From positions 124,001 to 188,000 of IMG/VR virus record IMGVR_UViG_3300027668_000008: a DNA stretch of 64,000 bases; one strand, 5' to 3'. This document shows positions 25,423 to 44,251 of this stretch, piece after piece. The notes under the pieces are model-generated. The model was not told the DNA's origin and did not search any database. It saw only the letters and a list, made by a program, of their open reading frames with translations. Position 1 is the stretch's first letter. Each line of letters opens with the position of its first letter. The position numbers and the translations under genes were made by a program.

Positions 25423-25566
25423 TTATTTTCCTTGTCCTCGGTATTTTTTGTAACTTCGTTTTTTACTTTTGTTCATAGAACTAAACTTTGTTCTAGAGTG
25501 GTTGTTCCCAATACTTGTTTTTTTTGGGCTTGTGACATGACCTTCATGTCCTTTATGTAATTTCAT
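25423..25566 (-). CDS. 47-aa highly basic peptide, not in the ORF track
   Basis: MKLHKGHEGHVTSPKKTSIGNNHSRTKFSSMNKSKKRSYKKYRGQGK. Confidence 0.7.
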   Translation of the reverse strand: MKLHKGHEGHVTSPKKTSIGNNHSRTKFSSMNKSKKRSYKKYRGQGK

Positions 25567-26310: not shown

Positions 26311-26340
26311 AAAAAAAATCCCCAGGCAGAGTGGGGATTT
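26311..26340 (-). terminator. Rho-independent terminator downstream of tmRNA
   Basis: AAATCCCCA-CTCTGCC-TGGGGATTT followed by a T tract. Confidence 0.85.
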
Positions 26341-37000: not shown

Positions 37001-37184
37001 AGTAGAGATCACCATTTTTCTTTTTCCTATTGAGTACACTTTTATTCACTAACATAAATGCCAACTTTAGTTGACCTGGGCTTAACTCAGTCATTATAAT
37101 TGACTGCTTAAATTCTCCTAAAAAGTCTTCTTCTTCCTTTGTCAATGAAACTCTTGCTCCATCGGAAAACTTATAGTATGTCAT
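36978..37184 (-). CDS. Small hypothetical protein
   Basis: 68 aa, coupled to the upstream stop. Confidence 0.7.
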   Translation of the reverse strand: MTYYKFSDGARVSLTKEEEDFLGEFKQSIIMTELSPGQLKLAFMLVNKSVLNRKKKNGDLYYVKENKK

Positions 37185-38091
37185 TACTTGCCTTGTTGCG
37201 TCTTAATCCATGCTTTTGCAACAGGATTAGTATGCGGTGTTTCTGTGTATGCTTTCATTCTTCTATACATACTCAGTAATACACCCTTTAGGCTTTCATT
37301 ATTTGAATTGTCTACTACGAACATATTTCTACCAAAAAAGTTGTGGAATTTTCCAATGTTTGTTTGTACACTTTTCCACATTTTAGTAACTAGTTCGTTG
37401 GGTAATCTTCTATCTCTTTTAGCATTACGTTCTAATGCCGTATCTAAGTCAGTGTTAACAAACACCATTGCACAATCGTATCCGATTTTACGCAATTCTC
37501 CACTTAGATGTTCTATTTTGTCATAATCTTTACCGGTGCCATCTATAACTACGCCTAGGCGTCCATCTAAAAAAGATTGTTGTTTTATATCAGTTAAGGC
37601 TTTAGCACGTTGTCTTGTCGCTTGTCCGTCAGTACTAGCAAGTGCATCTGGATCTGTTAAATCAATATTGCTCTTTTTTGCTAGATACTCATAAGCATCG
37701 TCGGTGTTTATTATTTTATATCCTAAAGACACAAATGCAACATTCTTAGCAATAAAGCTCTTACCACTACCAGGACCACCTGCTAGGAATACTGCTTTAA
37801 AAATTGCGGGATCGTTTACACCTTCTTCAAGGTCAGTCAGTCTTTTTTTTTGACCTCGGTAGCAATGGATACTGTTTGTCCGGGTTTAATTTTGGAGCCT
37901 TGTCCTTGGGGTTTAGCGGATTTTGGCTTAATGGTTGGAGCATTAGGATTTGAAGTATCTATATCCATTTTCTTTAGGTCAATTTTAGTCGTAACACCTG
38001 GCTTCTTTGGATCGATAATTTCAACATTATCGCCAGCAACCTTAGTTACTTTACCTTGCATAGGTTCTTCAAATAAATCACTAATTCTCAT
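37184..38091 (-). CDS. P-loop kinase (AAA_33/Pnk-like) fused to the 84-aa upstream ORF via a -1 frameshift at A9 (37843-37851)
   Basis: Walker A in AVFLAGGPGSGKSF lies upstream of the first canonical start (GTG 37732); no ATG/GTG/TTG in frame between the in-frame TAA and Walker A; VVIDGTG and ERNAKR lid downstream. Confidence 0.7.
37837..38091 (-). CDS. 84-aa unshifted product (MRISDLFEE...)
   Basis: ORF ends AAA AAA AAA GAC TGA. Confidence 0.75.
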   Translation of the reverse strand: MRISDLFEEPMQGKVTKVAGDNVEIIDPKKPGVTTKIDLKKMDIDTSNPNAPTIKPKSAKPQGQGSKIKPGQTVSIATEVKKKD

Positions 38092-38092
38092 T

Positions 38093-38410
38093 TTAACTCC
38101 GTTTATTCAATGCTTGAACACGTTTACTTGCTGGGTTGATACGTTTAGTACGTTTTGATTTCAACTTCATTCTGGATCCAAGTTTTGCTTTAGTCATTTT
38201 TAGTTTAATACGTTTTCTTATATCAGGTGCTTTAAAACACGCACCAGGACTACTTACTATTTTACCTTTTAATCTACCAATTGAGCATCTGTACTTTCGT
38301 ACAACTTTGTTACCCGAACGGCCCCAAGCCATTTTGGTTTCATCTAAAGAAGTAGGATGTACTTCTTCGATAGGTGTATTTTCGTCGCTGAATAGTTCTA
38401 ATATAAGCAT
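38093..38410 (-). CDS. Small basic putative internal head protein
   Basis: MLILELF, LDE site, basic C-terminus; TAAATA upstream. Confidence 0.65.
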   Translation of the reverse strand: MLILELFSDENTPIEEVHPTSLDETKMAWGRSGNKVVRKYRCSIGRLKGKIVSSPGACFKAPDIRKRIKLKMTKAKLGSRMKLKSKRTKRINPASKRVQALNKRS

Positions 38411-42074: not shown

Positions 42075-42857
42075 ATGAACTATGATTCACACCATGCAAT
42101 GCTTTCTGCCTGTGCATACACGGATCTAAACCCATCTATTGAAGCAACTTTTAGTAAAATAGGGTATAAAACCATCCATTTTTTGAATACCGATGGGGCT
42201 CAAGCATATTTGTTGAGCAATGATGACCTTATTACGATTGCTTTTAGAGGTACTGAACCTAGTCAACCTAGCGATCTTATTGCTGATGCCAAAAGTTGGA
42301 AAAGTAAGAGTAAAGTTGCAGGTAAAGTACATGATGGATTTTATGATGAAATTGAAAAGATTTGGGATGAAATTGAAGAATTTGCAAATAACAACCCAAA
42401 AAAACAAATGACTATTACCGGTCACAGTTTAGGTGCCGCGATGGCAACACTCTGTGCCGCAAGGTTACAAGATAAGTTTGAGGATTTAGCATTATATACA
42501 TATGGTTCGCCACGTGTTGGTAATAAAGAATTCATAAACAGTTGTAAATTTAAACACTATCGTTGGGTTAATAACAATGATGCGGTAACTAGAGTTCCAC
42601 CTGCGTTTATTGGTTTTAGACATCACGGTCAAATGAAATATTTAAACCATTTTGGCAATATTAGAAACGGGTTAAGTACATGGCAACGTTTCAAAGACAG
42701 GATACGAGGAAGAATTTCTGCTTGGAAAAAGTGGCAATTATTTGATGGTGCATATGATCACAGTATTAGTGATTACCATAGAAAAATTAATAAAGCACAT
42801 TTATCTAAAACAAAAGATGGTAAAGTGATACTAGACCAATTTAAACCTAAAGACTAA
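42075..42857 (+). CDS. Lipase class 3
   Basis: IAFRGTE, VHDGFY, ITGHSLGAAMA, YGSPRVGN, NNDAVTRVPP, DHSISDY; AGGAG RBS; TAAATA at 42032. Confidence 0.92.
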   Translation: MNYDSHHAMLSACAYTDLNPSIEATFSKIGYKTIHFLNTDGAQAYLLSNDDLITIAFRGTEPSQPSDLIADAKSWKSKSKVAGKVHDGFYDEIEKIWDEIEEFANNNPKKQMTITGHSLGAAMATLCAARLQDKFEDLALYTYGSPRVGNKEFINSCKFKHYRWVNNNDAVTRVPPAFIGFRHHGQMKYLNHFGNIRNGLSTWQRFKDRIRGRISAWKKWQLFDGAYDHSISDYHRKINKAHLSKTKDGKVILDQFKPKD

Positions 42858-44251
42858 GTCTTTAAATTTTTAAGCATATCATTCAGTTTATTAGACTGTA
42901 CTTCGGCTCGGACAATCTTTTCTGGTTGTTCGGCTGATTGGTTCCCTACATTAGATTGTGCTTTAATTTTATTCATCACATCTGTACTAATAGTAGAAGA
43001 AGCCGATGCAGAATCACTATCAGATTCATCACAATCTCTAATACGCAAACTATTGTTATCAAATTCTAAGTCTACTTTTTGCCCTACTCCACTACTACTT
43101 CTAGTTTTCATAAATTGTATTTGATATCTTCCACGTTCTCTCATTGCCCTACTAGTAAATATACCAATAACGTTATCAGCAGTATTAATTTTACTAATAC
43201 CACCAGCGATATGAGAATGGTCAAATTCAATTTCTTCAACTGCCGCTCTGTTTAACTGCGAAGCAGTTACCATAATAAAGTCCATTTCTTTTGCCAAGTT
43301 ACGCAATTCTTCACTTACATATTTGTCTTTAATAAACTGATCATTTGGACTAACTTTTGCACTAACAGGCATTAACAAGTCTAAGTAATCAACACAAATA
43401 TAATCTAGTTTTTTACCTATTTTAACTTGTAATTCTTTTATGTATGACCTAATATCGTTAATGTTACTTTGTGCTGGCATATACTTAATACGCAAACTTC
43501 CTGCTTTTTTACCAGCCATGCCAATTTTCATTTCAAGTGTATCTAAATCTTTAAAGACATCTTTAGTTGGAATTTCGGAAACCATACTGTCTAAACGCAT
43601 AGCACACAATCCTTCACTTAACTCTAATGTTAAGTATACACCATTAAGTCCTGCCATTGTCCAGTTAACTGCAAGATTTTGCATAAACAAACTCTTACCA
43701 GATCCACTACCACCTGCAAAGATGTTTAGTTCGCCTCTGTTAAATCCACCAAATAATTTCTTATCTAAGTTTGCCCAGCCAGTACTTACTTGACCATTGC
43801 CGTCTTTAAGAGCCATAAGTCTTGCTCTAGGATCTTCCCAATACTCGATACCTAAGTCTTTTGTTAAACTTATTTGTACTGCATCTTTAATTAGTTTCTC
43901 TACAGGATCATACTCGCCTTTTTCAAGTAAGTCTGCACTTTTTAAAATAGCACGTTCTAATTCGTTACGTCTAGTAAATGCTTCAAACTCAGACATAAAC
44001 CAATCATAATGACCTTCGGTTAATTCTTTTACTGGTTTAAGTTTACTTCCAGTAGCCGCATTAATCTGGTCTGCCGTAGGCATAGTGCTATATTCAGAAG
44101 TATGCTTTTCGATAAACTTTGCCGGTTCTCTTAAACTTTTATCAAAGTTTTCTGCGTTAAAAATATTTTGTACTCTAACGTAAGACTCTGCATCGTTGAG
44201 CATCATCTCTAAGAATAGTCTTTGTAAGTCTATTGTATATTCAGTTGCCAA
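42854..44251 (-). CDS. Replicative DnaB-like helicase (gp41-like)
   Basis: AGGSGSGKS, TLELSE, CVDYLDL, TASQLNR, IQFMKTRSS. Confidence 0.95.
   Translation of the reverse strand: MATEYTIDLQRLFLEMMLNDAESYVRVQNIFNAENFDKSLREPAKFIEKHTSEYSTMPTADQINAATGSKLKPVKELTEGHYDWFMSEFEAFTRRNELERAILKSADLLEKGEYDPVEKLIKDAVQISLTKDLGIEYWEDPRARLMALKDGNGQVSTGWANLDKKLFGGFNRGELNIFAGGSGSGKSLFMQNLAVNWTMAGLNGVYLTLELSEGLCAMRLDSMVSEIPTKDVFKDLDTLEMKIGMAGKKAGSLRIKYMPAQSNINDIRSYIKELQVKIGKKLDYICVDYLDLLMPVSAKVSPNDQFIKDKYVSEELRNLAKEMDFIMVTASQLNRAAVEEIEFDHSHIAGGISKINTADNVIGIFTSRAMRERGRYQIQFMKTRSSSGVGQKVDLEFDNNSLRIRDCDESDSDSASASSTISTDVMNKIKAQSNVGNQSAEQPEKIVRAEVQSNKLNDMLKNLKT

Follow-up and report, generated by a model that had tools for sequence, protein, structure and literature searches.

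A conserved run of nine adenines separates the two reading frames of a marine jumbo phage kinase gene and is probably a site of programmed recoding

The stretch of DNA analyzed here (the window, 64,000 nucleotides) comprises bases 124001-188000 of a 306,714-bp virus record, IMGVR_UViG_3300027668_000008 (G000), whose source is a marine jumbo phage. On its minus strand, two reading frames meet at a run of nine adenines (A9). The upstream frame, open reading frame 1 (ORF1), encodes a small N-terminal domain (N-domain) of 84 amino acids (aa) and ends GAG GTC AAA AAA AAA GAC TGA, while the downstream frame, which lies at -1 relative to ORF1, is predicted to encode an intact P-loop kinase of the Zeta_toxin/AAA_33 type. 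We propose that this gene is expressed through programmed recoding at A9, most likely transcriptional slippage, to yield both the 84-aa N-domain and a 302-aa N-domain/kinase fusion, a reading that we consider probable. The features of the locus are collected in Table 1.

Table 1. Features of the A9 locus (window coordinates; empty cells, nothing further to report).
Feature	Position	Strand	Description
ORF1	38091..37837	-	ATG start; 84 aa; small β-barrel N-domain; ends ...ATEVKKKD, then stop
Shine-Dalgarno (SD) sequence of ORF1, GGAG	38100..38097	-	
A9 slippery run, proposed recoding site	37851..37843	-	T9 on + strand; zero frame AAA AAA AAA, phased A_AAA_AAA
Zero-frame stop TGA	37839..37837	-	Two codons past A9; overlaps the kinase-frame CTG as CTGA
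Near-cognate CTG, kinase frame	37840..37838	-	
Kinase reading frame, -1 relative to ORF1	37187..37843	-	219 codons, AGA (R) to last sense codon
TAA stop of the kinase frame	37186..37184	-	
Walker A motif, GGPGSGKS	37780..37757	-	Upstream of the frame's first canonical start
L-E-E directly before Gly	37823..37831	-	Candidate prohead-protease (L/I-x-E) site in the disordered inter-domain linker

The -1 frame has no stop codon between 37885 and its TAA; it reads ...GGT CAA AAA AAA AGA CTG ACT GAC CTT GAA GAA GGT..., which translates across the junction as ...QKKRLTDLEEGVNDPAIFKAVFLAGGPGSGKS.... From 37885 onward, no ATG, GTG or TTG was found upstream of Walker A in this frame. The first canonical start is the GTG at 37732, past the P-loop, and gene callers that begin the kinase there report a 182-aa fragment (P0003) without a P-loop. 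The initial annotation of this locus had described the same layout, namely a minus-strand ORF1, an A9 run and an open -1 frame with no canonical start before Walker A, and all of these elements are correct; the kinase-frame CTG that it placed at 37839 is also present, but at the position given in Table 1.

The kinase frame matches Pfam Zeta_toxin (PF06414; 45.9 bits, cut-off 22.3) and AAA_33 (PF13671; 44.4 bits, cut-off 27) as well as the PHROGs family phrog_12810. Its fold belongs to the nucleoside monophosphate kinase/polynucleotide kinase (PNK)/zeta group, with Foldseek matches to zeta toxin, adenylate kinase and PNK (E 1e-7 to 1e-6) and, for the kinase domain of T4 Pnk, a template modeling (TM) score of 0.72 by target. 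Homologues that are 32-46% identical occur in Methylophilales phage Melnitz, Pelagibacter phage HTVC008M, Agrobacterium phage Atu_ph07 and Ralstonia phage RsoM2USA, and every family-invariant residue of a 63-sequence family alignment is present in the window kinase (50/50). The N-domain, in turn, gives only a sub-threshold KOW match in Pfam, no match in PHROGs or the Atlas, and no Foldseek match against the PDB below E 0.25; its AlphaFold2 (AF2) model has six strands, with a predicted local distance difference test (pLDDT) score of 73.5.

Past the window's own fragment, the nearest homologues are proteins of 301-306 aa that join an ORF1-like N-domain to the kinase within one frame. Such continuous proteins are encoded by a sister clade (L014, L015, L016 and L032) and by the P0004 group, and the window and these in-frame relatives share the order of genes surrounding the locus. 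Three of the relatives (P0020, P0021 and P0028, each 302 aa) read ...ATETEKKRLxxLxEGVNDP..., whereas the window reads ...ATEVKKKD and then stop in frame 0 and ...KKRLTDLEEGVNDP... in frame -1, so that ...ATEV-KKK-RLTDLEEG of the window stands against ...ATET-EKK-RLxxLxEG of the relatives. The DNA of the sister clade, ACA GAA AAA AAA AGA CT, also contains an A9 run, but in frame, and its gene is 909 nt long compared with a span of 908 nt in the window. A one-base shift inside the run would therefore produce a 302-aa protein that is collinear, residue for residue, with the in-frame relatives. In the AF2 model of the in-frame P0020 (pLDDT 82), a six-stranded β domain (residues 10-76) is joined to a confidently predicted kinase domain by a disordered linker (residues 79-89; pLDDT < 50) that contains the run-encoded residues.

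We refer to the window's lineage as W, to lineages with the kinase out of frame as frameshifted (FS), and to the in-frame lineages, in which the run is conserved as well, as I1-I4. The frameshift is real in the DNA. An independent IMG/VR contig has an identical junction and four substitutions elsewhere across 1 kb, the A9 run and its frame offset are identical in 10 of 10 distinct, near-identical W contigs (two haplotypes; JGI samples and one ENA assembly), and contigs with the exact 84-aa ORF1 number 74 across NCBI, JGI, Logan, ENA and Tara. A DNA pattern scan of IMG/VR and JGI metagenome contigs, together with N-domain protein searches, added five lineages with the FS layout: B (L022, L025 and L030), C (L018, L023 and L031), D (L021 and L029), E (L038) and F (L049, from which only the junction was recovered). 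In B-F, an N-domain of 80-81 codons is followed by AAA AAA AAA GAC TGA and a kinase in the -1 frame that likewise has no canonical start ahead of the P-loop, and both the GACTGA after the run and the overlap of CTG with TGA are conserved across the FS lineages. Counting W, at least six diverged lineages (W and B-F) have thus kept A9 out of frame. We discounted the invariance of the 22 nt that follow the run in W-D, which is partly an artefact of the search pattern (GACT, CTT, GAAGG and TAAACGATCC were fixed in it); E and F, which came from the protein searches, differ there.

The kinase frame is complete in lineages W-E (218-220 codons) and under purifying selection. The kinases of W, B, C and D share 58-74% protein identity at a synonymous divergence (dS) of 0.7-1.6, with ratios of nonsynonymous to synonymous divergence (dN/dS) of 0.23-0.28; those of C and D are 92% identical, with a dN/dS of 0.24. 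For the N-domain, dN/dS is ~0.1 in comparisons with the window. Conservation of the run and its offset in relatives, one of the checks proposed in the initial annotation, is therefore seen in six FS lineages, and the W-lineage DNA contigs contain no in-frame run of the kind that a homopolymer error would conceal. Since the easy +1 reversion has gone unfixed over such divergence, the out-of-frame genotype itself appears to be maintained by selection.

Three variant contigs deserve mention. In L048 (lineage B, JGI 3300039353, ~985-1000), the run is A12 and ORF1 ends KKKKD before the stop, a change by three that leaves the offset as it was. L051 (lineage D, JGI 3300042020, 1145-1154, ~1374) equals L029 except for A10 at the run, which gives an in-frame fusion (P0154), and one additional A in an A6 run 230 nt downstream; because of this second homopolymer insertion, its A10 was not used as evidence. 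The contig may stem from RNA or from an error-prone platform. The third, L052 (ENA ERZ23498511, ~1741-1760, lineage D), has TTA in place of TGA, so that ORF1 runs to 91 aa, and CTT in place of the kinase-frame CTG; this contig is of doubtful quality, with further odd substitutions at conserved sites.

In a tree of N-domains with the in-frame proteins as outgroup, the FS lineages form one group (85/86 support; 88% of bootstraps), which is consistent with one old loss of a single nucleotide as the simplest history of the group. In the tree of kinase domains the FS lineages do not stay together. There, the window kinase is placed, with weak support (82/82), beside the in-frame 306-aa P0004 group, while its N-domain sides with the FS lineages, and the gene may have undergone recombination between the sequences for its N-domain and kinase. 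A standalone 107-aa N-domain gene with a different tail and no kinase downstream lies on a 200-kb contig (L050; ENA ERZ25068665, 1501-1824).

The run is also exceptional within its own genome. No other homopolymer in the 306,714 bp is nine bases or longer, while a model of independent, identically distributed bases predicts ~15 such runs, ~11 of them A/T runs of exactly nine, and runs of eight number 8 genome-wide against 34 expected (they include window positions 25518-25525 and 26311-26318). Across 273 long ORFs, AAA makes up 71% of Lys codons; the codons AAA AAA AAA nevertheless encode none of the 19 KKK tripeptides found elsewhere, against an expectation of 6.7, and AAA AAA Lys pairs are depleted (133 versus 210 expected). 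These counts suggest selection against slippery runs in this phage.

Evidence from RNA comes from four metatranscriptome runs (X15, X19, X20 and X25), which were compared as assembled contigs with window positions 37150-38150. Only two RNA contigs span the run, record 8 of X25 (220 nt, depth 3.6) and record 5 of X19 (263 nt, depth 2.1), and they derive from different studies. Both carry an extra T on the + strand, corresponding to A10, the in-frame form, and both are otherwise identical to the window. In X20 a contig stops exactly at the edge of the run and in X15 no contig crosses it, as would be seen if variation in run length broke the assembly graph, or if coverage were low. A10 is hence found in 2 of 2 RNA contigs versus 0 of 10 W-lineage DNA contigs (Fisher P ~0.015; assembled RNA contigs of depth 2-4, DNA contigs from other samples), which favors slippage at the RNA level without proving it.

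Runs of nine A/T slip efficiently during bacterial transcription in vivo, and Thermus dnaX makes use of such a run (PMC5009743); nine bases is also the length of the RNA-DNA hybrid. In the mechanism that we favor, mRNA with A9 would be decoded in the standard manner to give the 84-aa N-domain protein, ending at the TGA two codons past the run, while slippage of RNA polymerase on the T9 template would add one A and the resulting A10 message would lead translation into the kinase frame. The fusion would consist of the N-domain, a Lys-rich disordered linker and the P-loop kinase, 302 aa in all. Frame translation indicates that A8 or A11 transcripts meet a stop within 2-3 codons and so would yield short N-domain products only; therefore, the run would set the ratio of short to long product. 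A ribosomal -1 slip on A_AAA_AAA would give the same protein and could contribute, although most of the shift is probably due to the polymerase and not to the ribosome. The slipping enzyme is presumably that of the host, as no phage RNA polymerase was detected: searches for PF00940 and PF00562 were empty, but the PF00940 control was silent everywhere, so absence is not shown. The central claim of the initial annotation, that recoding at A9 gives products of 84 aa and ~302 aa, is supported by the exactly 302-aa collinear relatives, the conserved FS layout, purifying selection and the two A10 RNA contigs.

Several observations weigh against this reading. The RNA support is thin, being drawn from assembled contigs with a word depth of 2-4, and an A10 DNA allele in the RNA samples, or slippage during reverse transcription or PCR, could also give A10 contigs. 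The second +1 A of L051 shows that some data sets contain homopolymer noise. The within-gene control is weak, as all-AAA is found in 6 of 16 conserved Lys columns across five lineages, which puts three in a row at P ~0.05. In addition, the conserved CTG that overlaps the stop (CTGA) leaves room for non-AUG re-initiation.

The strongest competitor is a purely ribosomal -1 programmed frameshift, in which the mRNA stays A9 and some ribosomes slip back one base on A_AAA_AAA to read AGA CTG.... Slippage and a ribosomal shift would give one and the same product, every FS lineage has the heptamer correctly phased for the zero frame, and A_AAA_AAA and A_AAA_AAG are known bacterial shift sites (PMC4066793, PMC3711429). 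We nonetheless consider this unlikely to be the whole explanation, because no conserved stimulator, either a downstream structure or an SD 10-14 nt upstream, was found among the FS lineages. No downstream structure is better than those of shuffled sequences (z -0.15 to -0.85), RNAalifold finds no covarying pair, and the sequence past GACTGA differs in E and F. Two putative stimulators had been singled out earlier, a hairpin, ACCTT-GAAG-AAGGT (5-bp stem, 4-nt loop), and an SD-like GAGGT, and both are present in the window. Neither is supported as a functional element: the hairpin is absent in E and F, has a stem of just 4-5 bp, is no more stable than shuffles and shows no covariation, while GAGGT lies just 3 nt from the heptamer and is missing from three FS lineages (D, E and F). 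Finally, nine adenines far exceed what a ribosomal shift needs, whereas they fit the hybrid length, and an mRNA that stays A9 is at odds with the A10 of the run-spanning RNA contigs.

A second and less probable alternative holds that the locus comprises two separate genes, with the kinase made by non-AUG initiation or by termination-reinitiation at the CTG, in the manner of ATGA coupling. The overlap of CTG and TGA is conserved in all FS lineages, the standalone kinases of HTVC008M, Melnitz and RsoM2USA begin at the corresponding position, frequently with coupling to the gene before them, and the N-domain alone (L050) and the kinase alone do occur as separate genes elsewhere. CTG is, however, a very weak start codon in bacteria, and no SD is conserved at a usable distance from it. 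The resulting product would lack the targeting residues F4/Y7 that are found in all 56 standalone homologues (see below), and the doubtful lineage-D contig L052 has CTT at this position. Initiation at CTG, which the initial annotation had named among the outcomes that would refute recoding, is thus disfavored, as it would also leave unexplained both the A10 RNA contigs and the retention of an A9 run that is unique in a run-avoiding genome.

DNA-level phase variation, in which the run changes length during replication and only an A10 minority makes the fusion, seems to us very improbable. Poly-A tracts are mutable (PMC3711429), and the A12 variant (L048) and the A10 contig (L051) exist, but L051 has its second homopolymer error, A10 or A8 is present in 0 of ~20 distinct contigs from the pattern scans, and 74 contigs carry the exact 84-aa ORF. 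The out-of-frame state is moreover fixed at dS > 1 despite easy +1 reversion, which argues that the FS genotype is itself selected. Finally, although homopolymers are classic sites of error and the run is indeed broken in error-laden long-read assemblies of in-frame relatives (P0131-P0134), we reject both a sequencing or assembly error that hides a true A10 genome and a recent inactivation to a pseudogene as scarcely credible, since the same A9 junction recurs in many independent assemblies and six diverged lineages and the kinase frame is intact, with a dN/dS of ~0.25 and all of its invariant residues.

Programmed slippage at A9 would be a mechanism of known kind in a new gene family and viral setting, and a literature search found no published description of this case. 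The closest parallels are dnaX of Thermus thermophilus and the two-ORF dnaX of Chlorobi, in which a run of ~9 A/T within the gene, run-length-variant mRNAs and nearby stops in the alternative frames give products with a shared N-terminus (PMC5009743, PMC3711429). These dnaX genes show programmed realignment during transcription, at runs of 7-10 A. In Chlorobi, as proposed here, the long product needs a slip while the short product stops just past the run; both polarities, in-frame and out-of-frame, are likewise present among dnaX homologues. In contrast to dnaX, the predicted product here would be a viral N-domain/kinase fusion and not a clamp-loader subunit. A stop just past a poly-A run, with added A's that restore the frame, is also found in tssM of Citrobacter rodentium and Yersinia (A11) and in Shigella mxiE and spa13 (T9/A-run); short and full-length forms are both made, and for tssM each form is important, as is the balance between them (PMC4256274, PMC5009743). 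These genes belong to bacterial secretion systems, whereas in the present case the interrupted state is conserved across a phage clade at dS > 1.

Among ribosomal systems, the -1 shifts of E. coli dnaX and of insertion sequence (IS) elements (A_AAA_AAG or A_AAA_AAA) resemble this locus in their A-rich heptamer, its phase, the -1 direction and the choice between a fusion and a truncated product. The SD 10-14 nt upstream and the stable downstream stem-loop of those systems were looked for at the A9 locus and were not found or not conserved. Recoding at a conserved phage site, with a short product and a longer one extended at the C-terminus in a fixed ratio, is likewise known from the G/GT tail chaperones of lambda-like phages (-1 frameshift), but they differ in gene, in slippery sequence (typically G_GGA_AAG-like rather than a long homopolymer) and in their ribosomal mechanism.

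The standalone homologues of the kinase offer a possible role for the fusion. We examined 56 of these, including P0012 and P0018 (loci L001:2479-3147 and L003:2486-3148). All have exactly ten residues before a conserved Gly, and in 56 of 56 this decapeptide has F/Y at position 4, Y/F/W at position 7, L/I/V/M at position 8 and E at position 10 (consensus M-x-S-F-K-x-Y-L-x-E, then G). In T4 internal protein IPIII, positions 4 and 7 are reported to govern capsid targeting and positions 8 and 10 processing by gp21 (PMC9026906), a protease that cleaves after Glu (PMC5694885). The standalone kinases thus share with the T4 internal head proteins (IPI-III and Alt) the decapeptide positions 4, 7, 8 and 10 and the Gly that follows, and a gp21-family prohead core protease is encoded in the phage genome (PF03420; G000:C1:234942-235391, minus strand, L053; E 3.3e-29, above cut-off), from which head maturation is expected to be T4-like. 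On the strength of these motifs, the family may be one of marine-phage kinases that are packaged in the head and injected.

The L/V-x-E-G portion of the motif is conserved in fused, FS and standalone homologues alike, while the fused and FS forms are without the aromatic targeting residues. The window fusion retains only L8 and E10 (LEE, then G), its positions 4 and 7 being R and D. It therefore differs from the T4 internal head proteins in that only L-x-E is kept, an 80-aa β-barrel stands in the decapeptide's place, and a location in the virion is putative. It is plausible that a gp21-like protease releases the kinase between Glu and Gly of L-E-E-G, producing a capsid-internal kinase that would be ejected. 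A further L/I-x-E motif lies at residues 6-8 of ORF1, whose first eight codons (38068-38091, minus strand) encode M-R-I-S-D-L-F-E, and it is kept in all homologues examined (IFE, IIE or LFE; ISE at residues 10-12 in L050); this may be a second prohead-protease site or mark a short propeptide.

Extending the T4 comparison, A9 could serve throughout the family as a switch, working in both directions, that sets the product ratio for a kinase delivered in the capsid, an idea that we offer tentatively and with more doubt than belief. The in-frame clade would slip to free N-domain and the FS clade would slip to the fusion; the N-domain, in place of the decapeptide, would carry a set, small number of kinases into the prohead, where the gp21-like protease would cut L-x-E-G after Glu and the kinase would be ejected with the DNA. 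If this were so, the failure of the +1 reversion to become fixed would be explained by selection on how much enzyme is injected.

Recoding at A9 would add a well-supported phage case of programmed slippage or frameshifting beyond the tail-chaperone and capsid examples, in uncultured marine jumbo phages. With both polarities around one run, the FS and in-frame clades form a natural pair in which to study the control of a product ratio by a slippery run. As to annotation, the present output of gene callers is an 84-aa orphan, on at least 74 contigs, and a 182-aa kinase without a P-loop, where the correct product would be the 302-aa fusion. The T4-type targeting peptide of the standalone homologues suggests packaged, injected kinases and provides a lead on early host takeover.

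Other arrangements of the kinase were seen in two of the phages with homologues. In Agrobacterium phage Atu_ph07 (490 kb; L002:1760-4096), the kinase domain occupies the central part of a 778-aa protein (phrog_12810 profile positions 258-464), a third architecture, and in Methylophilales phage Melnitz-1 the kinase gene (L001:2479-3147), which has its own ATG, overlaps an unrelated upstream 66-aa ORF (L001:2334-2531) by 53 nt in another frame.

The phage genome has a GC content of 35.9% and a CheckV completeness of 87%, and a megablast search of INPHARED phages gave no match to 20 kb. Neighboring genes encode ribonucleotide reductase, helicases, and tail-spike-like and virion proteins. An ORF for a DnaB-like replicative helicase (window 42854-44251, minus strand) is listed with a TTG start.

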